Shown: positions 1-24,785 of the stretch, piece after piece
How the letters are laid out: each line of letters begins with the position of its first letter
Position numbering within the stretch: the stretch's first letter is position 1
Assembly: GCA_016748015.1 (NCBI GenBank)
Contig: JAAOMT010000127.1
Span: forward strand, 33,312-97,311
DNA: 64,000 nucleotides
Source: Geosiphon pyriformis uo1
Lineage: Eukaryota > Fungi > Glomeromycota
Reading direction: 5' to 3'
Position numbers and translations under genes: made by a program
The notes under the pieces: model-generated
Seen by the model: the letters and a program-made list of their open reading frames with translations, nothing else
Told to the model about the DNA's origin: nothing
Databases searched by the model: none

Positions 1-954
1 CTGCAATCTGTGGTACCTTTAACAAATGATCAGAAAAAGCCCCAGTATTTGAATTCAAAGAGGAGAAAGAAATGCCACTTACTGAAACCTACATGGCTCT
101 TGAATCAACATTCAATTGGACTGAAGAAACAGAACAGGAGATTTTTAAAGAATCAAGAGGATGGAAGAAAGTTAGATATTTTATACCAAAACCACAGAAA
201 CAACCACCCTATATTTCACTCAAATGCAAAGATTGCAACAAAAAACTTTCATCAATGGAAGCATGTATTTTTCCAGAAGAGGAATATGAAACTTGTACCT
301 GTTACTTTTGCAAAGCATACCATAGAGAACAATTTAGATCTCCAAAAAGAAGTGGAAAATAGGACAACACATCTTGTCTTACATGTGGAGAAATGCTACC
401 AGAAGAATGCAATTGGATTGATGTAGCAATAAGAGAAGGAGTATGTAATCAAACCTGTCAATATGCTCTATCAATTTCGGAAAAAGTCAAAAGAGGAACA
501 CCATTTGATGCAGCATACAACAGTGCTCTCAATAAACTTTACCACTACCCTCATGATGCTGAAATAATTTTTGACTTAGCAATGGCATTGATCAATGAAG
601 CTACCAAGAAGATGTCCGCCAAATGAAAAAAGCTAAATACATTGAGTATACCATGGAATTAGCTAGATTTGATTATGAAAATAAAGTAGAAACCTACCAC
701 TAAATTGCAAGCCATATATATCCGACCAAAGAAACTCAAATTCAATGATTAGAGCAAATGAACATTCAATTGTGTGAAAAATGTGTTATGCCTTGTGATG
801 ACCAATGGTGTTTAAAATGTTATGCTCTTAGCATTTCTCTGCCAGATGAGAATGATGAAAATGAAATCGAATTTGGAGTATCTGAACTAGTAGAAGAACT
901 ACCAACCACCCCCATCTATCTTCTTGAAAAGCAACCATCTCTACAACTTAAATA

Positions 955-1375
955 TTTTGACAATTATGGCCAAGGAATCAGACCAGAAAAAGCACACGAA
1001 ATTGATGCTGGATATGACCTAAGATACTCAGGAAAAGATACTTTGGTTCTCCAACCAAAGTTCTTAACAAAAATTAATCTCAAAATTGCTCTTAAAATTC
1101 CATTAGGATCAATGGTTCAAATTGCCTCCAGATCATTATTGTCAAGCAAAGGAATCAATATTAGAGGAGGAGTTATAGATGCAGGATATACTGGAGACAT
1201 TACCATCATGTTACAGAATGAGACAGACAAACCATTCAAAATTGAACATGCTAAAAAAATTGCTCAAGCGATTTACTTACTCTTAATTAACATATTGGAA
1301 TTACAATCAGTAAACAACAGAGAACAATTGGGAAAAAGTGAAAGAGAAACTCAAGATTTTGGTTCAACTGGACGA
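955..1375 (+). pseudogene. dUTPase domain within pol of element A
   Basis: All five trimeric-dUTPase motifs in ORF 758..1960: AGYDL, IASRS, GVIDAGYTG, IAQ, R..QDFGSTG. Confidence 0.92.
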
Positions 1376-1859
1376 TTTACAGTTCCAGTAAACATAGCTC
1401 TTAATACACAAAATGAATCTTACCAGATTCTTCAACTTCCCCAGCCAATTACCATTTCACCTTTTGAAAAACATCATGAAATTTACACTTGCTCAAAATC
1501 CACCACTACACAACAAATCTTTGAATCCAATGAACAAATCTGTTTGAAGCATGAAATCTTAATTCCAAACGTTTATATCCCCAAAGGAATGAAAAAATTT
1601 CAAATTACATTCTACAACCCCAATAATTACCCTATTGTCTTATTAAACAAATTAGAGATTGGAATCATACACAGCAATATTTTTCAAGAGGAAGACCCTC
1701 AAATTGTTTTTAATTTCATCGAAATTGTAAGGCACACTCTACTCCCAAATCCAAATATCATTCCCACTACTGAAAACTACCACTTTTTGGAAGAAAAACT
1801 CTCTCAAATCAACATGAGTTTCTTAAAACCTCAACAACAAAGACAATTGAAACAATTGA

Positions 1860-3220
1860 TAGCTGAATTTGCAGATATATTTGCAAAAAACAACAATGAC
1901 TTGGGAAAAACAGACATTGTTCAACATCAGATCCATACAGAAGATGCTTCACCAAAATGACAACAAGCTTATCAAGTGCCACCTGTCAGCCACCAATTCA
2001 TCAGAGAAGAGGTCCAAAGAATGCTCAATAATAGACTGATTCAACCATCAAGAAATCCTTGGGCCTCACCAGTAGTTTTAATTAAAAAGAAAAATAGAAA
2101 AATCAGATTCTGTGTTGATTATAGACAACTGAATAGTGTTACAATTGGAGATGTCTACCCTCTTCCAAGAATTGATGACATGCTAGATGCTCTAGGAAAA
2201 GCCAAGTTCTTTTCAACTTTAGACTTAGAAAGTGGATACTGGCAAGTCGAAATGAACCCAAAAGACCGACCCAAAACAGTATTTACCATTCAGGGAAGAA
2301 ACTATAAGTTCAATGTTATGCCTTTTGGACTCTGTAATGCACCAGCAACATTCCAGCAACTCATAGATGTTGTATATGAAGGACTCTTGTGGCAATCAGT
2401 AGTTGTCTATCTTGATAACACTGATGTATACTCACCAAGCTTTGAGACTCATCTCATTTACTTGTGAGAAGTTTTTCAATGATTATGGAAAGCAGGATTA
2501 AAGTTAAACATTGAAAAATGTCACTTTGGAAAAACAAGCTTGATTTTTCTTGGACACATAGTTAGTAAAGATAGAATCAAACCAAACCCCAGAACAATTA
2601 GTGCTGTCAAAAATTTTCAAACTCCCAGAAATACTACAGAACTAAGAGAATTTGTAGGATTAGCCTCTTACTATTGAAAATTCATAAAAGAATTCTCCGA
2701 AATTGCCAAACCACTCAATTATTTTACCAACAAAAACATACCATACAAATAGACTGAAGAACAACAAAAAGCTTTTGAAACTCTCAAAACAAAATTGACA
2801 ACAGCCCTAGTTCTTGCTTACCCAGACTTCAACAAACAATTCCAATTAGCTACTGATGCTTCACACATAGCATTTGGTGCCATTTTATCACAATTAGATG
2901 AAAATGGCCAGGAACAAGTTATTGCCTATACCAGCAGAACACTCAAGTCAACAGAATTCAAATATGGCTCAACTGAATTGGAAGCTGCTGTAGTCATCTG
3001 GGCTTTCAAACACTTTCAACAATACCTGAAAAATAGAAAAGAATTTGACATAATAACTGACAATATTGGTCTCAAATGGCTTAATAAAAAGAAAACTAAA
3101 CAAAGTGCCAAACAGTCTCAATGGAATGACTTCCTAGCAGACTACAGATACATTGTACATTACAAACCAGGAAAATTACACACCAATGTTGATAGCCTCT
3201 CAAGAATGAGACAATATTAA
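1860..3220 (+). pseudogene. Reverse transcriptase + RNase H of element A (interrupted by stops)
   Basis: ORFs 1976..2467 and 2795..3220 carry Gypsy RT and RNase H motifs; ends NVDSLSRMRQY-stop. Confidence 0.93.
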
Positions 3221-3287
3221 TACCAACATCAACACCAACAAAACACCAACAAACTTAACAATAGAACAAATAACAAGATCAACAACA

Positions 3288-4674
3288 ATGGATCCAGAAA
3301 ACTACAACAACATCAAAAACTATTTGAAGACTCTTACCATGCCAGAAAATTGGTCTCCAAGTGAAAAACATTGATTACAACACCAATCCAAACAATATTT
3401 TATACACTATAACAAAATTTATTACAAAAATTGTAAAAACCCAAACCAACCACTCAGATTAGTACAGGAAAATAAAAAAGAAACAATTTTATATAACATG
3501 CACACAGATCCTTCTTCAGCACATTTGGGGAGAAATGGAACAATTCAAAAAACTCTTGAACATTATTTTTGGCCTCATATACAAAAAAAACATTCAACAA
3601 TATGTAGAATCTTGTAATAGTTGTCAAAGAAGAGGAAGAATCTGTCCCACAGAACCTTTAAATCCAATCAAAATTGAACAATCTTTTAACAGAGTTGGAA
3701 TTGATTTAGTCAGACCATTACCTATCACAACTCAAGGAAATTGTTATATTGCAGTTGCAGTGGATTATCTTACCAAATGGCCTGAAGCTAGAGCCATCCA
3801 AAGAGCAGATGCAAAATCAGTAGCAAATTTCATCTATGAAGACATTATCTGTAAACATAGATGCCCAATTGAATTCTTATCTAATCAAGGAACACATTTT
3901 GTGAACAACTTGATACAAAAAATTTGTGAATGGTTCAATGTCAAAAGACCTCTATTATCACCTTATCACCCTCAAACAAATGGACTTGTAGAATGTTTCA
4001 ACAGAACATTGTGTGAATCTCTAGCCAAAGTTTCAACAGACTTTGAGCAGGAATGGGATATCTTTATTCCATCAGTGTTACTAGCATACAGAACACTAAA
4101 ACAAGATACTACAAAACACACACCATTTGATCTTACTTATGGAAAAACAGCAATATTACTAATTAATTTCACAGTGAAAACATATCCAATGCAACCAATC
4201 AATGAAGAAAACTTTCAAGAAACACTCCAAAGAAGAGCCTACACTCTTCTTAGTACACTGGAAGAAAAAAGAAGAATAGCAGCAACTCATATTAAACATT
4301 CCTAAGCTCAACAAAAAGAAAGACATGACAACAAATTACCATCTATTACCAACGAATTTAAAGTTGAAAATAAAGTTCTCTTACACAGAACTAAGACTGA
4401 AAAACAATGGAGTGGGAAATTTGAAAACAAATGGGATGAACCATTTTATATTCACGAAATTCTAGACAATGGATCATACAAGTTAAGACTTGATGACAAA
4501 ATACTAGCAAAAGTTACACATGGAGCTAGATTGAAACACTATTATTCCAGAAACAATTCTGAACCATTAATTCCACAAATTGGTACACATTCTCTTTTAA
4601 TTAATCCTGAAAATATTCTCCAAAATTTAGAACCAATAATTATAATAGAACAACAACCAAACTTGAACACTTAA
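3288..4674 (+). pseudogene. Integrase of element A (own ATG; frameshift and stops)
   Basis: ATG 3288 (MDPENYNNIKNYL); HHCC zinc finger (H..H, CNSCQ); DDE core in ORF 3535..4305; GPY/F-like C-terminus (WDEPFYI...GSYKL); no chromodomain seen. Confidence 0.88.
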
Positions 4675-8900: not shown

Positions 8901-10105
8901 CTTAAAGACAATTATTAAAATTATAGAAATACTTAACATTTATTTATATTAAATGTATTTTGTTAAACGATTGCAAAATACAAAAAAATAATTGAAATAG
9001 CTAAAAAATAATTTTCAAGTAAATTAATACTTGCAACCATAGAAATTGATTTAAAAAAATACATTTTAAATCACGCTTTAAAATTGTAAACCAAAAATTA
9101 TATATTTGACATAATTATTTTATTATATTAATTTGCTACAATTTTACTTTATTCACTTCTCTTTGACTTTTCTAACTACTTTTTGTCATCAGAAATTATA
9201 CAAATAAGAATTGCAAAATTGGTTCACTTATATTATGTATTATGTATGTTAATTAATTTCTTTAACTCTCAAAAATATTTAATGTGATTATTATAAAAAT
9301 AAGAAAATTTGGTTTAAACTACTTAATATATTATAGAAGTAAAAACATCCTTATCACTAATAATATTTTTAAAGAAATAATTTTATTACCTAAACTATAT
9401 TACCTAAAAATAACGCATAAAGATGCTATCCGGCTTAGTTTTAACTCGAATCATGATCAAACTTTTAAAATTAAATCTAACACAAGGAAGAATTAAAAAA
9501 AAGTATATAATAGTTACTTAAGAAATATATGTATTTAAGCAGCAAAAATTAGTATTCAAACTCATTATAAATTTGAAAGCTTGCAACATATTAGTAAATC
9601 AAGATATCTTATAGTTGGTTTTTTTAATGTAATTATTTTATTTATCTATTTATTTTCTAAATCGTATTTACTCCTTAGGGATTTTAACCTTGCAAAGCTA
9701 TCTATCAAATATTAATTATAGCTTATAAGGAGGATAATTAAGATTATCAAGGTTTTGTACTAAATATGATATAATCCATTTTAACGCCTTCCCATCGTTA
9801 AGAACCTTATCATATTAAGGTCTTAAAATAAATTCGAAGGTGGTATTTCGAAATAATGAAATAATGAAATTTAAAATTTCTTTTAGATCTGCTCGCGATA
9901 TAGATAAAGCTCATCGTTCTAGTGATGATAGGTAACAGAAAAAAGGTTATATAAGAAAGTAATTTAGTATTTATTGACTTTCAATGAAAGTTTAGATTAA
10001 AATTTATTTCCAATTGGTTTTTATTAAAAAAACTTCAAATTATTGTTTTAATCTAAAAGAGCATAGTAATAAAACATCTAAATTTCTTTTTATCTATGCG
10101 AGCCT

Positions 10106-10534
10106 TTAGCAAAGCCCACCATAACCCCGGAATGAGGATAGTCCTCCCATATAGCCAGTGCCGTAGCCGAGATTACCATATCCAACACCACGGCCGAGAT
10201 AACCATCAATTGGAGCATACAGATTACTTTGAAGAGGGGCTCCAATAATTCCATCATATCCAATTGGTGAAACGGCAAGCGGGCTTACAATATTTTTGAT
10301 CGGGGTAATGGGATTGAGCACACCTAAACCAACTGGAGCTATGGTTCCAATCTTCGCAGCTGCCGTGGCAGGCAAAGCAGTAGCAATCGGGGCTTTATTG
10401 ATAATTCCATCAGAGGGTTCCCTTTTATAAAAGCTCAAATGCGAGTTTGAATTATTAATAATTGGAGCTGATTGGATTTGGATAGCGAGAAGAATTGTAA
10501 AGAAACTAGCAAAAAATTTTTTAAAGGAGGGCAT
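10106..10534 (-). CDS. Small secreted Pro/Ala- then Gly/Tyr-rich protein, 142 aa, signal peptide + KR-EP processing site (copy 1)
   Basis: Intact ORF with ATG in AAAATG context; N-terminus MPSFKKFFASFFTILLAIQIQS-AP resembles a signal peptide; YKR|EP; GYG/GY-rich tail; CpGs retained, unlike the surrounding TEs. Confidence 0.85.
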   Translation of the reverse strand: MPSFKKFFASFFTILLAIQIQSAPIINNSNSHLSFYKREPSDGIINKAPIATALPATAAAKIGTIAPVGLGVLNPITPIKNIVSPLAVSPIGYDGIIGAPLQSNLYAPIDGYLGRGVGYGNLGYGTGYMGGLSSFRGYGGLC

Positions 10535-11023
10535 TTTAAAATAAAATATTTTAATTTTAAATGATATTTTTTTTAAAGAGATTATTCTTTTACAAAGAAA
10601 AAAAATGCTTTTTTAATATTAAATACTAGGAATAAGAAGAATCTTATTTATAATACCTTTTTTAGTGCTTTATGAAATTTCCGACTTGAAAAATCGTCTT
10701 TCACGCATAAATTTAGATCAAATCTTTAAAAGAGATAGCATAAAGTAATAAAATTGCTTCAACTTTTATGGCATAATTCAAGTTTGATTTTTCTAGCATA
10801 ATATCATATTTTCTTAAAAAGATTAAAAACTATTTAGCATAATATAAAAACCTAATTTAATCAGAAAGCACATAGGCAGGGAAAGAAATGGTAAAATGAT
10901 TGCATTATCTAAAATTCATATTTATGAATTGCTAAACTCTTCCCCTAAAAAAAGTATCCACTCATTAAAAAATAAAAAACTCCCAATTTAAAAGCAATTT
11001 GACAAAATTTGATAATTATCAAA
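10535..11023. promoter_or_regulatory. 489-bp divergent intergenic region, probable bidirectional promoter (second copy 22858..23346)
   Basis: Lies between head-to-head start codons; AT-rich with TATA-like words (e.g. TATAAAAA ~10843); no specific site assigned. Confidence 0.5.
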
Positions 11024-11983
11024 ATGATTAACAGTAGAGCTAAGCTTGTCAAACTTTTGGTCACTCTTATTGCTCTTTCGTCTTCTATCTTCCAAAGCTT
11101 TTATGCATCTGCAGCTCCTATTGAAACGCGTAGTTTTCTGACAGGGTATAAGCCAGTTATTCTTCTCAATACCGCCCAAGAAACCATTGCATGTAATGAA
11201 GCCGCCAATACTAATCAACTCGAGATCGAAGCAGCCAATGCAGCTCAGACAGCGAATACATATGACAATGAAGCTGCAACAACTTTCTTATTCAATAAAC
11301 GGAATTTACTGCCAGGGTATAAACCAGTTATACTTTTCAATACCGCCCAAGAAACCATTGCATGTAATGAAGCCGCCAATACTAATCAACTCGAGATCGA
11401 AGCAGCCAATGCAGCTCAAACAGCGAATACATATGATAATGAAGCTGCAACAACTTTGCTTTTTAATAAGCGCAGTTTTCTAACAGGATATAAGCCAGTC
11501 GTTCTTCTCAATACTGCCCATGAGACTATTGCATCCAATGAGGCCGCCAACGTAAACCAACTCGAGATTGAAGCAGCCAATGCAGCTCAAACCGCAAATA
11601 CTTATGATAATGAGGCTGCTGCTACTTTACTTGTCAACAAACGGAATTTCTTGGGTCAATATAAACCCGTCATTCTACTTAATAGTGCACAAGAAACTAT
11701 CGCTTCCAATGAAGCCGCCAACGTAAACCAACTCGAGATTGAAGCAGCCAATGCAGCTCAAACCGCCTGTAGCTATGATAATGAAGCTGCGACAACCTTT
11801 TTATTTAATAAACGCAATTTTCTAACAGGATATAAGCCAGTCGTTCTTCTCAATACTGCTCATGAAACTATTGCATGCAATGAAGCTGCCAACACAAATC
11901 AACTTGAAATTGAGGCGGCTAATGCAGCTCAAACGGCAAATACATATGATAATGAAGCCGCCGCTACCCTTCTCGTAAATTAA
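11024..11983 (+). CDS. Secreted Kex2-processed repeat protein (KEP): 36-aa leader + five 55-aa peptides separated by KR, 319 aa (copy 1)
   Basis: ATG at 11024 (ORF-track start 11009 is non-ATG); hydrophobic signal ending ASA-AP; ETR| then 171-bp/57-aa repeats, the first four ending NKR; last unit ends at the stop exactly where KR would be. Confidence 0.92.
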   Translation: MINSRAKLVKLLVTLIALSSSIFQSFYASAAPIETRSFLTGYKPVILLNTAQETIACNEAANTNQLEIEAANAAQTANTYDNEAATTFLFNKRNLLPGYKPVILFNTAQETIACNEAANTNQLEIEAANAAQTANTYDNEAATTLLFNKRSFLTGYKPVVLLNTAHETIASNEAANVNQLEIEAANAAQTANTYDNEAAATLLVNKRNFLGQYKPVILLNSAQETIASNEAANVNQLEIEAANAAQTACSYDNEAATTFLFNKRNFLTGYKPVVLLNTAHETIACNEAANTNQLEIEAANAAQTANTYDNEAAATLLVN

Positions 11984-13329
11984 AAGCAAATTTTTTAAAA
12001 TTAATGCTAATCACACACACGTTATATTTTTCCTGTAATTTTACAAGATTAAATAATTATGTAATCGAGTTTTATTCGGTTAAATTTATCTTGAAAAAAA
12101 TTTCAGTCCGCTTAAATAAAACTTGGTTATTTTAATTTGAGGTTATCTTAAATTGAACTAGGTCTTATCTTGCAAACCTTTCTTTTTCTAACGAGTCTTG
12201 AATAATAGCTCTTTTGAACTATTAAGCAATGACGAATCAAAGTCCAAAAATAGCTATTATGAAAATTTTATAAAATACTTTAACGCAAGTTCGCCATGAA
12301 AATTGAAAATGTAATAGGATAAATTATATGCTAAAAATATCGCGGTTTTATCATTTCAGGTTTATAAAAAAACAGTTTTTTTGGAAATATTAATTCTGTA
12401 TAATCATTAATATTGTATTAAACATTGATTGCCAGAAATTGTTATTAAGGTGAATAAGTGTGATATTTTGTAACAACTAAAGTTCATTAAGACTAGTTGA
12501 AAGTTGATTTGGTTTTTTATTTTTAAATGTAATTTATAGATAGTAGTTAGATTCTTAAAGAATATAATACATTAAAATAAATGTTTAATTAATTTAAATT
12601 AATAAATTTATAATTTAATACTTATTCTTAAAGTCTATGAGATTTTATTAAACTCTTAAAAAAATAATAATAAGAATTCTAATGAATATTATCTGGACAA
12701 ATTAAAGTAATATAATTTAATATAATTATTTTTGTATCTTTAAAGCTTTTTAATAAAATATAAATAAACTACATTATTAAAATAACCAACTATTATTATT
12801 GCTTGTTTTGATGTAGTTTTTAATTTATTGAATTTTTAAATATATCTTCTATAACAAAATTATTTCATAAATAAAACAAAAAACAAGCTTTAAATATTGC
12901 AATTATAATGGGTATTATTTAAAATAGTAATTAGAATATAAATTTTAAAAAATATTTATAATATAATAAGTATTTTACAGCAGTATATGTTGGTATATTA
13001 TTAAAAACAATTGCTAATAATTTAGTTTTTAACATCTAATATATTTTTAATTATAACTTTAATCATTTATTTTCATTTTGAACTTATATTAATTACTTCT
13101 CAAATTTAAAATTTATTTGCTAATAAAATAATAAAAAGCCAAAAATAGGTTGGTTTAAAATATTTTTCTATTTATCAAATATCAAAATAATTTTAATGCT
13201 GTTTTTTTTATGTAATATAATTAAATTGGCTTTTTTAGCATTTAAAATACTATTTAATAAAGCAGTTAATTAAAAAAAATTAAAATTAGATTTAAAAATT
13301 TAAAAAATTTTGAATTATTAAATTTGTTA

Positions 13330-16300
13330 TTTTTTTTTTAATTGCTTAATGAGTGAGGTCCAAACACTACCTAGTACTATACATCAAAGAATTGATCTAA
13401 ACTAGGCATGAATCATGTACTTTCTACACATGACCAGCCACTCGGGCCAATCAGAACAACACTATGCAGCTATATGAACTGATACTGATTCACCTATACC
13501 TGAAAAAAACAAACAAGACTTGTGAAAACCAAAATAAACACCTAGAGCATTAGTGATGCCAAGTAACCTAACCACCTCTGCAGAAAACCTCTAAGCCAAA
13601 CCATGAACTGAGATGATGGCCGAACCATCTAGCAGGATCAGTCCATTCTTCTCCATATATGCACGATGCTTAACACAAACCAACTAGACATCCTCCCTGA
13701 AAGCAAGACCAAGAGAGTGCACAAACTTGACAATCTTCAAAACAGCAATCTTGGGGTTGTGAAAGATGGAAACAGTCTCGCAAAACCACTTATTGAAAAC
13801 AAAGCCCTTAAAAAAAGCCATGGACACAGAGGAATCAGAAATACTGAATGATAACAGCTGCAATATACCTGAGGAAGAATAAGAGAAACCAGAAAGTGCC
13901 TTCCAGGACCCTACATGAGAATCCAACAACTGACTTCGAACAGACTCGTCAACCTTGTAAGAGAACACATGATCCGACACCTCTACCTTATCACAATACA
14001 AACACAACACGCTAAGATAATGTCTATTATAGAGGCGCTTTCGAACAGCAACTGGCAGCCGATGGTGTAAAGACTTCATAAAGTAAGTACGCATACTGGA
14101 CAAAGACCTGTTGGTGAAACCTGCAGCCATATGCAAATTAGAATGCCATACCAACAATGAGTGAGGCCAATCAACCTCAGAAGACAAGCTGCTCACCAAA
14201 ACCCCAGAACCAGAACCAACCTCTCATTGTGCATGACAAATAGAATGATAAATATCATGAACAAAATGTCTCGAATTTCCAGAAACAATACTACCATCAG
14301 CTGACAAGAAGTGCTTACTCAAGTGAGAAGGAAGATACCAATTGGAGAGAGAAGTAGCACCAGCAATCGCGTCAGCACGCTTGTTTCTCAAAACACCAGA
14401 ATGATCTTTTACCTTGTGAAAGCTAACCCTCAACTTCTTACTGCAAATCACGTTAACAATATGACGACGTTTGACCCAATACTGATTACGATAATCGGAA
14501 TACACCAGACCCAACTCCGACCTGCAAGCATCCAAAGCCGATTGACTATCTGAGAACAAACAAACAGAGCTTGATGAGAAAACACACTCCAGAGCCAAGG
14601 CAACAGCCTGCAATTCCGCCAAAGTAGACGACATCAAACCCAACACACTAACGCCCAAATCTAAACCAATGTCCTCAAAAAAAACAGCAGTGCCAGCTCT
14701 ACAGCCAACCGTGCCATGATTACTAAGGGACCCATCTGTATATACTAACAGGCTGCTAGCACTGGTTGCCAAGAGATAATCACAAACAGACACAATTCAT
14801 CAGACTCAAGAATGTTTGAAAGACCACCATCACCCAAAACTAAAGACTGAACATGAAAAGATCTCACACTATTGAGAAACAAAACAGAATGCTTGAACCA
14901 CTCAGGAACTGGGCCATGGGGGTCCAATCTCTTCCACCACTTGAAAGTGTACCAATCATAGACAGCACCATGACGGTCATGAAGTTGATCCACAAAGGCA
15001 ATACTATACCACCGAAGGGAAGGGAGAAACCTAAGAAACCTTGACTCGCCCAAAAGCTCAGACATAGGCACTCCACCATAAGACCGAAAGGAACTAACTA
15101 AAGAGCCACCCAGAAACACATTGCAATCGAGAAGAACACAAATCATGCCTGCCAGAAAGTTATTAGATGCACTGACATAAATACGAACAGGAGAACTCAA
15201 TGGATGAACAGGACGCCAACACAAAACTTGCAAGTCATGAGACCTGTAGGAAAACAAATAACCCAAGATACCACCAGAGTTTGCAAAACTGACAAGGGAA
15301 GCAATCTTGCTTTCAGATTGAACTTGAAAAAATGACTTTAAACCATAAAATGAAGGGTGATAAATCACATCATTAGGGAAATCGAGTGGCAAACCAGACT
15401 TGAGCTTCAAACCTTTATGAATCAGAGCATCCCACTTGTTGTACACACCAACAGGAATAAAACTGAACTGAGTTCTGTAGCTGACTATTGGATGCAGAAC
15501 TGCCAACACCAAATACAAGAACTGCTTATCTGAGACCACCTTCCTCAACACCAGATTGGTAAAAAAGCGAATGTCCGAATGTGCCTTAACCAAGCTAGGC
15601 TTTGAAAGACCCTCAGTTGATAGAAAAATGCCCAGATATCAGTAAGATTCCCCCTTTTAGGCAATAGAAATGGGTGAACCACTAATAGAAAGAAAGGGAT
15701 TGCTAACTCTGCTATTGATAGGAATGGCTACCATTTTGTTATTATTAATAGAGATGTCATTAACACGAAAAAATTCACTAGCAACATTAAGAATATGCTG
15801 AGTAGCCATCTGACTGCTGCCAACCCAAATCGTATCATCAACAAAAGCACCAGTGGCAAAAAAAAAAGAAAATCCAGCCTGAGGTTTGGAACAACTATTC
15901 TTGGAAACAAAGTGAGAAATCAACCTATACCCACATATACTCTCCTGTCTTTTGACTTCGCACAAAAAAGGATCATAAAATATGTGCCAGAGAAGAGGAG
16001 AGAAGACCTCTCCCTGGTCCAAACCATTATGCACACAATAACCACTTGTTAATCCAAAATCAGTCATGACTTGATTGGTACGATTCCTATGAATACCGCC
16101 AAAAAACCGAATAAATTTGCTACACATCTTAATCCTGACCAAACTCTTCTTGAGATGCTCCCAGCCAACTGAGTCATATGCCTTTCGCATGTCCTGTAAA
16201 ACCAGCCAGAGTTCCCTGTTTTTTTCCAAAGCATTTTTGACCACTGAACCAATTGCAAAAATAGGAAACTGGGTCGTTGTACCTTTCAGAACTGAAAAAT

Positions 16301-19300
16301 TGGCCCCCCGAAGCACATTAAAAGTACTACATGCCAAAGAAATCCTGTTAGAGAGGATCTTGGAAAGAATCTTGTGAGCCATTTCAATTAAGGCAATAAG
16401 ACATGTATTTATCAAAACATTTTTCCACTCATAAAATTTGGGAATCATTAAGACCTATGCTTCCTTCCAAGGACCGGGCACTGATTCACTAGACAAACAA
16501 GAGTTCAAGAGCACCAACAACATATCTAAAACCGACCTATCACAATGTTTCCAAAGCTCATTTGAAATACCCAACAAACCAGCCGCTTTACCATCCGGAA
16601 GATCAGAAACCACCCCAAGGAACTCATCATACTCAATCGAACACATGACTTTAGAAAAAGCTTTATCAAAAACATACTCCAGCAGCTAATATTGGAGGTG
16701 CCAATCATCCGAGACATTATCAATCACCCGACACTTCCTAGTCCAACCTTCTATGATCGCATCCACCTTGGACTTGACCTGCTTAGGTTCTAAAATCAAA
16801 TCATCATCAACTACCAAATGATCCAGCACAATCTTACGAAACAGGCACTCTAACACACTCTTTATTGTATGATCTTTATCTACTTCAAAGCTTTCCATCC
16901 TCTTGTCAATCACAGACCTGATGTTTGCATCTTTAGTACTCTGAGATTTAACAAGCTTGGACACCCGATAAGATTTCTTGGCACCAAAAAGAGCAGAATG
17001 AACATGATTAGATTCCACACCAGATCCTAAACAACCGAAGCCTTGACACTGTTTAGAGAAGCCCAACACTTCATAAGAAAAGCAAAATCCACAGCACACC
17101 TCACACGAAACGCCTTAATAATCTTTGAAACCAGAAGTTCTAACTTGTGAAATCTTGAAGACTCTTTGGTAAAAATATCATTAAATTCCTTAAACCACTT
17201 TTTCTTGAACACTTCACTAGCCAAAAGAACTATTATCTTGTGAACAACATCCCATATTGCATCCAAATCTGAAAAACCCACAAAAATAGTGAACTCATTT
17301 GAGAATATTGTTGCATTAGCCAACGTGGCATACTTAAAATTGATCCATTTACCCTTATCAGCACCCTTGAAATCGAACTTCCATCTGTTCCTGTTTGCTT
17401 GTTTGCGAAAAGAGTTCAATTGCATATCCAGAAGTTCACCTAGACCCAAAGACACCAAAACAGCTTGATGATCTGTGTCAGAATGCTCACTGACACCTGA
17501 AACATTACGACGTATCATCACATTGACCAGATTTGGAGAGACAAACATGTAATCAATTGTTCTCTTGACACTCCTAGAATTCTCCCAAGTGGGCATTTTT
17601 ACAGCCAGGCTCCTGACCAAAGAGTTAATCAATCCCAAATCAAGGCACTTCTTGAAACTCGCACACTTACAAGAGCCATCTTCATTAAAATCACTGCTGA
17701 GAATAACAAAGGAAGACTCATTAACAGCCTTTGCAATGATAGAGTTGATTTTGTCTGTCTGAGAGAACCAGACTGCTGAAGAAGCACCAGCATAAATTCC
17801 CAAAATTGACACAGAGAGCTTATTCTTAAAAAGTAATTTGATAGACATGAGCTGACCCAGCACCTCAAACACCTTACACACATGTTTCGCCAAAGAAGAG
17901 TTCATAACTACCACCACACCAGCACCCAGATACCCAGAATCCAAGCCAGTAGTAAACACCCAAACTCCATTAAACTTGTTAATGATCTAGGGTCGAACCC
18001 TATCCTTTAACTTAGTTTCAGTAAAAATAGAAATTGAATTGTCTATGTCCTTATGCCAACAAACAACATCACTCTGCTTCGCAGGGTTGTTCATTCCTCT
18101 AACATTGCATGTAGCAACTTTCTATACTAATTCACTCATTGGGAGGGAGATTGGAAGTTCGCACTACCAGTCAAAACCAGACTATCAAAACAAGCGGACA
18201 AGCTTAACACAGATTTGGAAAGGCCCTTTAACATATTTTCTAATCTAACAACATAAGGGGATGTAGACGAGTCCACAAACATGGCAGACTCATGGCCATT
18301 GGCCATACTCAAATCTATTTCCACTGTCACATTACTTTCTGAATTCTGCAGTGGGATAATCACTGGCAGCCAGCATTTGTGACCAGGCTGGGGAACCACC
18401 AGCATGAGCAACTCTAATTTCTTAGTTAACTTATCAATTTGTCCTGCAAGACTGACAAGACCATCTTCAATACTAACCAATTTCTTTTCTAAATTTTTTG
18501 CAACAGGAGGGGTAGGTTTACCATCGATGATGGAACCAAAATGTGCCTTACTACCAGAGAGAGAGGGAATAGAGAAAGCACCAACCACTAATGCCCAAGT
18601 TTTACTGTCAAAAGCCAAAAGACGAGAGATAGATGCAGATTTCTTTGCATAAATTTTTGCCAATCTGGATTGGTCCTGAGCCAAAAGGGGAGCCTTTCTG
18701 CCTTCTGCAATCCCAGCATTTTTGACTGATCTACAACTGAGTGCAGTATGACCAAAATTCTTACAAACCGCACATAAAGCCAAAGAAAGACAAGACCAAT
18801 GGAGACCAAGTCTTTTATAACTGGGGTTGTTGCCATTGCATTAACTAATTCCACTTCTGAGCTAAAACACACAGTGGCACAGCGGATGTGAGAATAACTG
18901 ACGGGATTGTGATTGATAAAGCAGGTTTTTCCACCAATAGAACCAATAAAATCCCACAAATCATGAGCAGTAGTTCCCATGGGGAGAATATATAGCAAAG
19001 TCCTAAAATTATTCCTGGCATCCCATAATTGTTTGTCGATGTCAGCCCTGGCTACCCGAACCATATCCTTCTCAATAAGGATAGACCACTTAGAGGCTAA
19101 AAAATCAGTCTGGTCTTAATCTTCCAATTCGATGATCGCTTTTTGCCATAAACTCACCAGCTGCATTTTGATCGACTTAATGATGCCAAATTCGGCCACA
19201 GTCGTACGCACAGTCTCCAAAGATGTTCCCACAGGAATTTTCTTTAGCACAATTGCCCGATTTGTACAATTGTTGACAGGGCACTTGAGATTAGTGTTTA

Positions 19301-20091
19301 CCATAACACTATGATCATTAGCCAGATTTGCCACAGTTATCATCACCTCTTCAGAAGTAAACGTGGCCTGAATGATTCCACCAAATTTTGAGGGGGTAAA
19401 AGCTCCCCCAAAACCATTCACACTAGAGAAAAGTTTTCTGACAAAATGTAGTTTTTTCTGAGATGATTTTCCAGAAACAGCCACAAGATCAATATTCAAA
19501 GCAAAGGATTTACAAACAGAAATTTGAATAGAAGGTTTAAGCAGAAGAGGTGGTAGAAGAAGAATAGAATTATCCAAAACATCATCATCATCATTGCTTT
19601 TTCTGCCAAAATCAATAGTACTTAGAGGCTTTCCAAGAACACGCTTGGTAACAATTCTCTTGGGACCTTTGGGTGTTGCTTCAATGTCATTACCTCCAGA
19701 CTCTCTTTTACTCTCAAGCTGAAAGCTTGTTTCTTCGATCAGATATTTTTCCCCTATATCGACACTTTCCAACTTAGTAATATTTCCACTCTCATGCCTA
19801 ACCAAATTGCTAGAGGCGGCACCTGCAGAGACACCAACTATCTTGACAGGTTCTTTCAGCAACCCACCTTTGCATTTCTTCCTGGAAGAGGAGTTGACTA
19901 CAGCTGTACCAGAAAGTGATTTTTTTTTGGACCCCTTTATAACAGAAATGCCACCGCCGACAGCAGCTTTGTATTCAAACAAAAACGGTTTTGAAGTATC
20001 TAACTGAATAGCGACAAAAAATACGAGAAACAAAAAACTTTTTTCAAAATATGTACTTTTTCAGAACTTTGGGAAGTAGGAGAGAAAGAAG
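13330..20091 (-). mobile_element. Full-length non-LTR retrotransposon (LINE copy 1): ORF1 + ORF2 (APE, RT, RNase H, C-terminal Cys motif); degenerate
   Basis: ORF1 with zinc knuckle CAVCKNFGHTALSC; ORF2 ~18139..13462 with TCNVRG, DFN, IDY, TDH (APE), QDMRKAYDSV, QGEVFSP, FVDDT (RT), YTDGS...DSQ (RNase H); poly(A) tail as T-run at ~13330. Confidence 0.93.
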
Positions 20092-21897
20092 TTTTGTTTT
20101 TTTTTCTAACAAAAATGTTGACAGTTATTTTGATTTAATTAAACTACTTAAGCTCATTAAAGTCTTTTGTTATCTATTAAAATGTTTATTTATTTAATAT
20201 TATTATTCAAAACAATAATTACTTTTTTTTATAATATTTTTAACAATAAAATTAATTATTAAATTTAATAGTTTTTTAAATAATATAAGTAAAATAAAAA
20301 AACATTAAAAATTATGTTGCTTATATAAGTATTATTATTTATCAAAAATAATAATTGTATATATATATAATACAATTTTTAAAAATTATTAATTAATTAA
20401 TATGTTAATATTTTGCGATTTTTTTAAGCTTAAAAACATTTGCTTTATTATTTGTCTTGTTATAATAAATGTTTACAACTTCTTAAGATTTTAGTTTAGT
20501 ATAAAAATATGTATATTTTTTTAAATAATTTTAAATAATGTTTTTAATGAATAAGTTTTTTAAAGTTTTTTTTATAATTAAAAGCTTTATTACAAACTTT
20601 ATATATAGGATAATTATTGTATTTATTTGTAGCTTTTACATTAATATAATATTATTTGTAAATTTATGTTTTTTAGAACTATTAATGTGTTGTCAAGCTA
20701 TTTTATATATATATACAATTATATATTTATTATTTTATATGTAAAAATTCTTTTACCAAGTTATTAAAAACATTAAACATTATTGAATCTTTTAATAAAC
20801 AAAAATTTTAAATAAAAAGATTTAGGATAATTTTTTATTAGAAGTTGTTTTATTATATAATTCTAGTTTAGTTAAGTTCAATTTTAGTAATACTTACTGG
20901 ATATTTCAATGAACATTATTAATATATATGCTCTAAAGTAAACATAATTATGTATTTTTTACATATAACTAGCTATTCAAATTCAAATACAAATATAAAT
21001 ATCTTTTAAATATTAATTTTGTTTTTTAATTTTCAATGTTATTTATAAAAATAATTAGTTTTATTCAAATGCTTTTTCTTGTAGTTGTATGCTATAAACT
21101 TTTTAAAATTTATTGTTTGTTAAAAAAATTTTTTATAATTAGTTCAAGATTTTCAATTTTCAGGTTTTTATTTTAGATTATTTAAAAGTCGAGAGTTCAA
21201 AATATGAATAATATCTTTTTTAGAATCGGGAATCTCTATTATTTTATATTATACTTTAAATAATAATAACAATAAGTTAAAACTTAAAGAAATTTATGAC
21301 TAAAAGAAATAATAGTTTCAAGATAAAATTTCTATTAACGTCAATATTCTTCTAATTTCTTTAACTATTTTATTAACTTAAAAAAAATCACTTAGTTTAT
21401 TGCTTTTAAAATATTTTATGCAAAATTCAAAATTCTGCAAATAGAAGTTATGCATTTATTTAATACAATATTAATGATTATACAGAATTAATATTTCCAA
21501 AAAAACTGTTTTTTTATAAACCTGAAATGATAAAACCGCGATATTTTTAGCATATAATTTATCCTATTACATTTTCAATTTTCATGGCGAACTTGCGTTA
21601 AAGTATTTTATAAAATTTTCATAATAGCTATTTTTGGACTTTGATTCGTCATTGCTTAATAGTTCAAAAGAGCTATTATTCAAGACTCGTTAGAAAAAGA
21701 AAGGTTTGCAAGATAAGACCTAGTTCAATTTAAGATAACCTCAAATTAAAATAACCAAGTTTTATTTAAGCGGACTGAAATTTTTTTCAAGATAAATTTA
21801 ACCGAATAAAACTCGATTACATAATTATTTAATCTTGTAAAATTACAGGAAAAATATAACGTGTGTGTGATTAGCATTAATTTTAAAAAATTTGCTT

Positions 21898-22857
21898 TTA
21901 ATTTACGAGAAGGGTAGCGGCGGCTTCATTATCATATGTATTTGCCGTTTGAGCTGCATTAGCCGCCTCAATTTCAAGTTGATTTGTGTTGGCAGCTTCA
22001 TTGCATGCAATAGTTTCATGAGCAGTATTGAGAAGAACGACTGGCTTATATCCTGTTAGAAAATTGCGTTTATTAAATAAAAAGGTTGTCGCAGCTTCAT
22101 TATCATAGCTACAGGCGGTTTGAGCTGCATTGGCTGCTTCAATCTCGAGTTGGTTTACGTTGGCGGCTTCATTGGAAGCGATAGTTTCTTGTGCACTATT
22201 AAGTAGAATGACGGGTTTATATTGACCCAAGAAATTCCGTTTGTTGACAAGTAAAGTAGCAGCAGCCTCATTATCATAAGTATTTGCGGTTTGAGCTGCA
22301 TTGGCTGCTTCAATCTCGAGTTGGTTTACGTTGGCGGCCTCATTGGATGCAATAGTCTCATGGGCAGTATTGAGAAGAACGACTGGCTTATATCCTGTTA
22401 GAAAACTGCGCTTATTAAAAAGCAAAGTTGTTGCAGCTTCATTATCATATGTATTCGCTGTTTGAGCTGCATTGGCTGCTTCGATCTCGAGTTGATTAGT
22501 ATTGGCGGCTTCATTACATGCAATGGTTTCTTGGGCGGTATTGAAAAGTATAACTGGTTTATACCCTGGCAGTAAATTCCGTTTATTGAATAAGAAAGTT
22601 GTTGCAGCTTCATTGTCATATGTATTCGCTGTCTGAGCTGCATTGGCTGCTTCGATCTCGAGTTGATTAGTATTGGCGGCTTCATTACATGCAATGGTTT
22701 CTTGGGCGGTATTGAGAAGAATAACTGGCTTATACCCTGTCAGAAAACTACGCGTTTCAATAGGAGCTGCAGATGCATAAAAGCTTTGGAAGATAGAAGA
22801 CGAAAGAGCAATAAGAGTGACCAAAAGTTTGACAAGCTTAGCTCTACTGTTAATCAT
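21898..22857 (-). CDS. Secreted Kex2-processed five-repeat precursor (copy 2, identical protein)
   Basis: Translation identical to 11024..11983. Confidence 0.92.
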   Translation of the reverse strand: MINSRAKLVKLLVTLIALSSSIFQSFYASAAPIETRSFLTGYKPVILLNTAQETIACNEAANTNQLEIEAANAAQTANTYDNEAATTFLFNKRNLLPGYKPVILFNTAQETIACNEAANTNQLEIEAANAAQTANTYDNEAATTLLFNKRSFLTGYKPVVLLNTAHETIASNEAANVNQLEIEAANAAQTANTYDNEAAATLLVNKRNFLGQYKPVILLNSAQETIASNEAANVNQLEIEAANAAQTACSYDNEAATTFLFNKRNFLTGYKPVVLLNTAHETIACNEAANTNQLEIEAANAAQTANTYDNEAAATLLVN

Positions 22858-23346
22858 TTTGATAATTATCAAATTTTGTCAAATTGCTTTTAAATTGGGA
22901 GTTTTTTATTTTTTAATGAGTGGATACTTTTTTTAGGGGAAGAGTTTAGCAATTCATAAATATGAATTTTAGATAATGCAATCATTTTACCATTTCTTTC
23001 CCTGCCTATGTGCTTTCTGATTAAATTAGGTTTTTATATTATGCTAAATAGTTTTTAATCTTTTTAAGAAAATATGATATTATGCTAGAAAAATCAAACT
23101 TGAATTATGCCATAAAAGTTGAAGCAATTTTATTACTTTATGCTATCTCTTTTAAAGATTTGATCTAAATTTATGCGTGAAAGACGATTTTTCAAGTCGG
23201 AAATTTCATAAAGCACTAAAAAAGGTATTATAAATAAGATTCTTCTTATTCCTAGTATTTAATATTAAAAAAGCATTTTTTTTCTTTGTAAAAGAATAAT
23301 CTCTTTAAAAAAAATATCATTTAAAATTAAAATATTTTATTTTAAA

Positions 23347-23775
23347 ATGCCCTCCTTTAAAAAATTTTTTGCTAGTTTCTTTACAATTCTTCTCGCTATC
23401 CAAATCCAATCAGCTCCAATTATTAATAATTCAAACTCGCATTTGAGCTTTTATAAAAGGGAACCCTCTGATGGAATTATCAATAAAGCCCCGATTGCTA
23501 CTGCTTTGCCTGCCACGGCAGCTGCGAAGATTGGAACCATAGCTCCAGTTGGTTTAGGTGTGCTCAATCCCATTACCCCGATCAAAAATATTGTAAGCCC
23601 GCTTGCCGTTTCACCAATTGGATATGATGGAATTATTGGAGCCCCTCTTCAAAGTAATCTGTATGCTCCAATTGATGGTTATCTCGGCCGTGGTGTTGGA
23701 TATGGTAATCTCGGCTACGGCACTGGCTATATGGGAGGACTATCCTCATTCCGGGGTTATGGTGGGCTTTGCTAA
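23347..23775 (+). CDS. Small secreted Pro/Gly/Tyr-rich protein (copy 2, identical protein)
   Basis: Translation identical to 10106..10534. Confidence 0.85.
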   Translation: MPSFKKFFASFFTILLAIQIQSAPIINNSNSHLSFYKREPSDGIINKAPIATALPATAAAKIGTIAPVGLGVLNPITPIKNIVSPLAVSPIGYDGIIGAPLQSNLYAPIDGYLGRGVGYGNLGYGTGYMGGLSSFRGYGGLC

Positions 23776-24785
23776 AGGCTCGCATAGATAAAAAGAAATT
23801 TAGATGTTTTATTACTATGCTCTTTTAGATTAAAACAATAATTTGAAGTTTTTTTAATAAAAACCAATTGGAAATAAATTTTAATCTAAACTTTCATTGA
23901 AAGTCAATAAATACTAAATTACTTTCTTATATAACCTTTTTTCTGTTACCTATCATCACTAGAACGATGAGCTTTATCTATATCGCGAGCAGATCTAAAA
24001 GAAATTTTAAATTTCATTATTTCATTATTTCGAAATACCACCTTCGAATTTATTTTAAGACCTTAATATGATAAGGTTCTTAACGATGGGAAGGCGTTAA
24101 AATGGATTATATCATATTTAGTACAAAACCTTGATAATCTTAATTATCCTCCTTATAAGCTATAATTAATATTTGATAGATAGCTTTGCAAGGTTAAAAT
24201 CCCTAAGGAGTAAATACGATTTAGAAAATAAATAGATAAATAAAATAATTACATTAAAAAAACCAACTATAAGATATCTTGATTTACTAATATGTTGCAA
24301 GCTTTCAAATTTATAATGAGTTTGAATACTAATTTTTGCTGCTTAAATACATATATTTCTTAAGTAACTATTATATACTTTTTTTTAATTCTTCCTTGTG
24401 TTAGATTTAATTTTAAAAGTTTGATCTTAAAAAAATATAAATTAATCCAAATATAAATTTTTTATTTTTTAAATTAATAAAGCAATTATATAGACAATAT
24501 TTTAAAAGCAGATTAAACATATTAATATATTTTTGGTATTTATTAATGATTTAAGACTTTTAAAAAGCTTTATTTTGTTTTTTTAATAGTATAATATAAT
24601 ACACAAATATTAAATTACTTATAATATAACTAAATTATAACAAAAGAATCTTAACAATATTTTTAAATTGACAAAGACTTACTGTTTTTAAAATATTATC
24701 AAGCTTAATTTTATAAAATTTTTAAATAATTTATAGATTATGTAATTACAATTAAGATAATTTAAAAATAATAACACAATATAAA

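Follow-up and report, generated by a model that had tools for sequence, protein, structure and literature searches.

A repeat precursor of the KEP type in Geosiphon pyriformis and its peptide family across Glomeromycota

Introduction

Which product is made from a gene of Geosiphon pyriformis that encodes five nearly identical units of 55 residues, and what might this product serve for? Arbuscular-mycorrhizal (AM) fungi and Geosiphon are difficult objects for genetics, and a role is known for very few of the molecules that they secrete. An earlier note, made from the DNA letters, had read the gene as a secreted precursor from which Kex2 releases linear peptides, and had put these forward as a candidate repellent or functional-amyloid system, or else as a host-directed effector or signal. 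The window is the whole stretch of DNA that was analysed (64,000 nucleotides); positions refer to it unless another contig is named. The Geosiphon assembly that was searched comprises 128 Mb.

Results and discussion

Architecture of the precursor and of its units

The coding sequence of the precursor (11024..11983, + strand) consists of 319 codons plus stop in a single exon, as deduced from the list of ORFs, the identical protein P0001 and the purifying selection described below. The ORF (11009/11024..11983, +) is intact, and the 319 residues are counted from the first ATG; in the other frames across the locus the longest open stretch is at most 98 aa. Between 11134 and 11958, Tandem Repeats Finder determined a period of 171 nt with 4.8 copies, 81% matches, 0 indels and a score of 1004. 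Splitting the protein yields first a pre-pro piece of 36 aa with TR at its end, then four 57-aa units that close with KR, and finally a 55-aa unit. According to a heuristic reading of hydropathy, residues 1-30 (11024..11113, +) resemble a signal peptide with a basic n-region, a 13-residue hydrophobic core (Kyte-Doolittle value of about 2.0) and a putative cleavage site between ASA and AP; the N-termini of all homologues are likewise hydrophobic. The adjacent pro-piece APIETR, which ends in the monobasic TR, was delimited by the protein split and by comparison with homologues (11114..11131, +). Units 1 to 4, each of 55 aa plus KR, follow at 11132..11302, 11303..11473, 11474..11644 and 11645..11815; unit 5 (11816..11980) has 55 aa, lacks KR and precedes the stop codon (all + strand, protein split). 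The units make up 283 of the 319 residues (89%). The five-unit plan with KR separators and the consensus that had been read from the letters are therefore correct, and the signal peptide and the short pro-piece ending in TR were found as described, the former on heuristic grounds.

The predicted peptides have masses of 5.78-5.91 kDa, a pI of about 4.1 and a net charge of about -5 each, and contain no N-glycosylation sequons. Their most frequent residues are Ala (20%), Asn (15%), Thr (11%), Leu (10%) and Glu (9%). Each peptide begins with a hydrophobic head (FLxGYKPVILL), continues with a core rich in Asn, Ala, Thr and Glu and ends with a hydrophobic tail (TxLF/V). At position 11602, DNA contigs carry a T>C exchange with about two thirds of the summed depth; it stems from one contig and lies 33 nt from its end. 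It is probably a cross-placed sibling unit or paralogue and not a true variant.

Age and selective constraint of the units

The array might also be no functional gene but a tandem repeat of DNA that, in surroundings full of transposons, is open in one frame by chance. The surroundings of the array would suit this explanation, being rich in transposons and in AT (15-19% GC in intergenic DNA of the window, 34-43% in coding-like stretches). Between the five units, however, dS ranges from 0.24 to saturation, dN from 0.04 to 0.16 and dN/dS from 0.03 to 0.20. Because dS is high and dN is low, the units are old and each is held by purifying selection; the high dS between them further means that the array is no recently homogenised satellite. 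The comparison of the precursor with its paralogue on contig C789 gave a dS of 0.92, a dN of 0.087 and a dN/dS of 0.096. Such low ratios in the presence of saturated synonymous change argue against a chance reading frame, as do the conservation of the family across orders of Glomeromycota, the orthology of unit positions between Dentiscutata species and the single open frame. A non-genic origin is thus extremely improbable and effectively refuted by the data on selection and conservation; judged from these comparisons, the precursor is a real and strongly constrained gene.

Distribution of the peptide family

Relatives were searched for by words and, exhaustively, with the profile of an alignment of 20 units against 1.84 billion representatives. 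The profile search yielded only 20 proteins at E<=1e-3, and all named ones are from Glomeromycota. The closest named proteins are the hypothetical proteins G9A89_023661 (85% identity) and G9A89_023662 (84%) of Geosiphon pyriformis. Members were found in at least nine genera, namely Geosiphon and Ambispora (Archaeosporales), Acaulospora, Dentiscutata, Racocetra, Gigaspora and Diversispora (Diversisporales), Entrophospora, and Funneliformis (Glomerales). The plan of signal, pro-piece and 3-6 units is present in Geosiphon, Ambispora, Acaulospora, Dentiscutata, Racocetra, Gigaspora and Entrophospora; Funneliformis has a one-unit form, and Diversispora is represented by a short match of 55 aa. No homologue from Rhizophagus was found in a search that had no positive control or covered an incomplete database.

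No characterised family was matched by the profile of the 55-aa unit: the 20 hits consist of proteins from Glomeromycota and two bacterial-type proteins. A Pfam scan at E<=1 returned GTP_EFTU_D3, CATSPERG_NTD and others with no significant single stretch; these matches are artefacts of summing over repeats. There was no match to the precursor among PDB sequences, no look-alike in the ESM Atlas, and no match to the profiles of curli or of other functional amyloid repeats defined in Pfam.

In a tree of 61 units, these group by lineage, and the units of two Dentiscutata species group by position. The unit arrays are therefore stable and not constantly homogenised. The Geosiphon genome contains 24 copies of the unit. 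Taken together, this is a peptide family without a described function that is found across Glomeromycota, and its type of precursor is already well known.

The published RIC proteins of Geosiphon, which are GN-rich and 456-470 aa long, are different proteins. For Gigaspora rosea, Kamel et al. (2017, PMC5293756) list GrSP2479 and GrSP2488 as KEX2-repeat secreted proteins, and the expression table contains large, highly significant fold changes for GrSP2479; both may be members of the family. Although the files of the KEP catalogue supplements that were covered, a part of the whole, contain no match to the peptide strings of the units, the family may already be listed in an earlier KEP catalogue.

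Dibasic sites and predicted processing

A signal, a short pro-piece ending in (K/A/T)R and 3-6 units recur in every multi-unit member of the family. At least 90% of the aligned units contain K56 and R57, and in the domain table with its 86 unit matches, the dibasic pair closes nearly every internal fungal unit. The C-terminal units across the family lack it. In paralogues from Acaulospora and Dentiscutata, the pair is doubled around a spacer (KR-spacer-KR, for example NEDKR, DENKR and DQHPSSDQKR), and in Funneliformis-type proteins the single unit is still trailed by KR and then by further KR-bounded pieces. The residue at P4 of the KR site is hydrophobic; Kex2 prefers a hydrophobic P4. A kexin gene with exons for Peptidase_S8 and P_proprotein is located on contig C608.

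KEPs are defined by a signal peptide and by at least three near-identical repeats that cover at least 15% of the protein and are separated by KR, RR or KK (Le Marquer et al. 2019, PMC6339444). The Geosiphon precursor has a signal peptide according to the heuristic reading, the repeats, and KR between the units, and the genome encodes a kexin. Because dibasic pairs bound the units throughout the family and a kexin is at hand, every sequence feature of a KEP is in place. It is therefore highly likely, as far as a comparison of sequences can tell, that the protein is a pre-pro-polyprotein of the KEP type, and cutting at Lys-Arg into five near-identical acidic peptides of 55 residues is very probably its predicted fate. 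The structural reading of the earlier note, namely a secreted precursor of an early-diverging fungus with Kex2-type release of linear peptides and no RiPP tailoring, is well supported by the comparison and by the kexin gene, from which we infer the cleavage.

The signal peptide would take the precursor into the ER. A late-Golgi kexin would then cut after each Lys-Arg, and probably also at the end of the pro-piece, after Thr-Arg. Once a Kex1-type carboxypeptidase had trimmed the basic residues, five linear peptides could be exported that are nearly identical and have 55 aa each (about 5.9 kDa, pI about 4.1, charge about -5). The first cleavage site is monobasic in Geosiphon and Ambispora (TR or AR) and is KR or AR in other genera; that it reads TR and not KR in Geosiphon is an observation that speaks against KEP processing.

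Alternatively, the secreted protein might act uncut, as a repetitive or intrinsically disordered wall protein in which KR is a linker or a partially used site. This question has been debated for SP7 of Rhizophagus, which is described as acting natively despite its KR sites (Kamel et al., PMC5293756), and the AlphaFold model of the whole precursor is unstructured, with a pLDDT of 30 and no confident fold. The latter is what is expected of a polyprotein. Against an uncut protein, nothing at the unit ends varies less than the dibasic pair, which is doubled around spacers in some genera; it is missing exactly at the C-terminal unit, it still trails the single unit of the one-unit forms from Funneliformis, and a kexin is present. 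We therefore regard action of the uncut protein as improbable and retain the KEP-type precursor in what follows.

Comparison with known repeat precursors

The KEP class has already been documented in Glomeromycotina, namely in Rhizophagus, Gigaspora and Diversispora, in two surveys (PMC6339444; Umemura 2020, PMC7329392). With KEPs, the Geosiphon precursor shares the signal peptide, at least three near-identical repeats, KR between them, a coverage of 89% and a kexin in the genome. In contrast to them, it encodes a long peptide (55 aa) without the STE13 dipeptides that are typical of KEPs from Rhizophagus. This peptide also matches no described KEP peptide that was found, the catalogue supplements being covered in part.

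The Saccharomyces precursor of alpha-factor, MF-alpha1, has the same pre-pro-repeat plan and the same route of processing by Kex2 and Kex1. However, the Geosiphon units do not carry XA or XP (STE13) after KR but start with S/N-F/L-L, and the peptide is about four times longer (55 compared to about 10-15 aa) and without sequence similarity. Because the STE13 dipeptides are lacking and the peptide has 55 aa, this is not a precursor of the alpha-factor type.

Ece1 of Candida albicans is a secreted polyprotein that is cut by Kex2 at KR and trimmed by Kex1, and one of its peptides is helical and bioactive (PMC5784256). Ece1 serves here as an analogy only; unlike its peptides, which differ from one another, the Geosiphon product would comprise five near-identical and strongly acidic peptides. 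Candidalysin is a membrane-active toxin.

Precursors of ustiloxin- or phomopsin-type RiPPs likewise combine a signal peptide with repeats separated by KR, but the Geosiphon units exceed RiPP cores by far in length and show no conserved core motif containing Tyr. The profile of UstYa/DUF3328 (PF11807) found no match in the whole assembly, in a search without a positive control. Since a UstYa gene was not found, we do not consider the gene a precursor of ustiloxin-type RiPPs. The neighbourhood agrees with the claim that tailoring enzymes are absent nearby: it consists of retrotransposon remnants and of a small secreted Gly/Pro-rich gene.

The likeness to Rep1 of Ustilago maydis bears on function. 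Both are secreted precursors with Kex2 sites that give rise, in Geosiphon by prediction, to many similar peptides with hydrophobic and hydrophilic parts. The Rep1 repellents have 34-53 aa (PMC3133707, summarising Wosten 1996 and Teertstra 2009), compared to 55 aa in Geosiphon. Geosiphon itself appears to be hydrophobin-less, as hydrophobin profiles gave no match in the assembly in a search without a positive control. On the other hand, there is no detectable sequence relation to Rep1, and none of the 20 matches of the profile search is from Basidiomycota. Rep1 peptides build amyloid fibrils in the wall and provide surface hydrophobicity or attachment; for the Geosiphon unit, the hints in this respect are indirect, namely the period-2 conservation described below, against which stands the helix predicted by AlphaFold.

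Unit structure and candidate functions

For a single unit, modelled with the alignment of 61 units, AlphaFold predicts an unstructured hydrophobic head (residues 1-13) and one long helix (residues 14-54); the mean pLDDT is 75, and the two central blocks of ten residues average 87-89. Across the columns of the family alignment, conservation has no helical periodicity (100 degree, p of about 0.5). Instead, it alternates with period 2 at positions 28, 30, 32, 34, 36 and 38 and then at 41, 45, 47, 49, 51 and 53. Over residues 14-54 this signal has a p value of 0.007, and over residues 26-54 one of 0.001; if units that are more than 80% identical are removed, the two values change to 0.03 and 0.007, respectively. 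The region was picked post hoc, and the signal weakens after redundancy filtering and correction for multiple tests. The alternation would fit an extended, beta-like strand that is constrained on one face. Because the region was chosen after the pattern had been seen, we hold this signal as suggestive only.

We lean, tentatively and with a weak hold, towards peptides that form abundant self-assembling material of the fungus's own wall or surface, similar to the Ustilago repellents. A role in the wall or surface is favoured over that of a host-specific effector because the peptides are conserved from Geosiphon, whose partner is a cyanobacterium, to AM fungi that live with plants, are present in 3-6 copies per precursor and display the beta-like alternation. 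The amyloid or repellent idea of the earlier note is the most attractive hypothesis on what the peptides may do. Observations that speak for self-assembly are the Rep1-like size of the peptide, its conserved hydrophobic ends, the multi-copy dosage, with 24 units in the genome, and the lack of a hydrophobin match in the search without a positive control. The helical model of the unit and the charge of -5, which disfavours aggregation at neutral pH, speak against it.

A serious rival is a diffusible signal. The peptides might be a self-signal resembling a pheromone or hormone, or a broad effector of symbiotic partners (candidates are plants, cyanobacteria and hyphosphere bacteria), that acts through a conserved receptor or target and does not self-assemble. 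Alpha-factor and further signalling peptides are found among the KEPs (PMC6339444), the very strong conservation of the core fits a ligand with a conserved partner, and the AlphaFold model is that of a soluble acidic helix. The unit found in a bacterial protein, which is described below, further hints at the interface between fungus and bacterium. Yet 55 aa are long for a fungal signalling peptide, the STE13 signature is absent, and conservation extends to the hydrophobic ends. Rapid evolution is usual for effectors, whereas this peptide has been conserved across hosts as unlike as Nostoc and land plants. We consider a diffusible signal possible but not probable, and keep self-assembling wall or surface material as the preferred, loosely held reading.

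The peptide core is nearly unchanged across the orders of Glomeromycota, including the cyanobacterial symbiont, and there are several copies per precursor and several genes per genome. Conservation and dosage make the peptide a candidate for a basic, lineage-defining function, be it as wall or surface material, in self-signalling or as a factor of the interface in general. Its small size would permit synthesis and thereby a direct test of its properties. If self-assembly were true, the peptides would represent a second, independent repellent solution outside Basidiomycota, and the rare bacterial carriers would indicate that exchange takes place where fungus and bacterium meet. If the peptides were an ordinary KEP product, a well-defined, unannotated family would be added to the catalogue.

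Unit-like segments in bacterial proteins

Two secreted, bacterial-looking metagenome proteins carry one unit or unit-like segment each. The first, P0018 (L011:909-1322), has 137 aa and is encoded on a 1.6-kb contig with 66-69% GC next to a glyoxalase-type neighbour. It possesses a Sec-type signal and one C-terminal unit, which matches that of Geosiphon with 67% identity over 48 aa (library-wide E of 1e-11). In the tree, this unit is nested among those from Archaeosporales with weak support (91/60). The second, P0027/P0030 (L009:8001-8564), has 187 aa and stems from a proteobacterial-looking 12-kb contig; its unit-like N-terminus (E 8e-4) is joined to RTX calcium-binding repeats. Searches of 185k bacterial and archaeal species genomes and of metagenome contigs, together with the word search, revealed no further bacterial relatives. 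The simplest reading of these matches would be a rare transfer of the unit from fungus to bacterium. The most far-reaching combination, namely that the peptides are an ancient, self-assembling cross-beta surface or wall material of the Glomeromycota crown that takes, in these hydrophobin-less fungi, the place which hydrophobins and repellents have in Dikarya, with the module passed at least once to a bacterium, seems rather unlikely to us.

Palindromes, gene copies and the neighbouring gene

The window contains a perfect inverted repeat whose left arm of 2,968 bp (9455..12422) contains the precursor gene; the right arm is located at 21459..24426, and the spacer comprises 9,036 bp. The right arm harbours identical copies of both the precursor and its neighbour gene. 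The second precursor copy (21898..22857, - strand), which is 100% identical, had been overlooked in the sequence-only first note. In Logan contigs of one DNA run, the depth is about 177-186 in the arm and about 89-105 outside, and the contigs break exactly at 9455 and 12422. Because the depth is about twofold and the breaks coincide with the arm ends, the two copies are real and no assembly artefact, unless this run is the assembly's own source, which is possible. It is the one DNA run that contains the region; the two other runs of the sample, X2 and X3, have no coverage.

Head-to-head with the precursor lies a gene for a secreted protein of 142 aa, rich in Gly, Pro and Ile and with one KR pro-site (10106..10534, - strand, ORF list); its second copy is found in the right arm (23347..23775, +). 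Both secreted genes have in common a divergent intergenic region of 489 bp (10535..11023), defined by the ORF list, and this arrangement recurs at a decayed module on contig C789. The neighbour protein consists of a pro-piece ending in KR and a mature part rich in Pro, Ile, Gly and Tyr. It has no Pfam match and relatives only in Geosiphon; matches in the Atlas are sub-threshold and cuticle-protein-like. Beside the homologues in Ambispora, Entrophospora, Acaulospora and Funneliformis, the neighbour gene is absent, and the head-to-head pair appears specific to Geosiphon, as far as tested. A kinship of the neighbour protein with the Gly-rich tail that is fused to the unit in Funneliformis-type proteins was rejected (BLASTP E 0.73 and 34).

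The spacer of the palindrome is filled by a fragmented non-LTR retrotransposon (13684-20033, -), whose endonuclease, RT and RNase H are encoded by separate ORFs. Elsewhere in the window, in the pol region of an LTR retrotransposon (758-4305, +), RT, RNase H and integrase are preceded by a dUTPase domain, and further RT fragments are located near 27.4 kb.

A second palindrome on contig C789 (C789:331138-336257; L024:1639-6758) carries a convergent pair of precursors with 5 and 4 units. Its arms are 94-98% identical, and the copies are identical unit for unit except for one missing unit of 171 nt. The two palindromes suggest gene conversion from arm to arm or recurrent inverted duplication at precursor loci. 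About 10 kb away, the decayed third head-to-head module (C789:342495-344011; L025:4496-5964) contains a precursor with frameshifts and stops, of which a 145-aa ORF with 2 units and further units in other frames are left, and a neighbour gene truncated to 120 aa. One orphan unit is present on contig C614.
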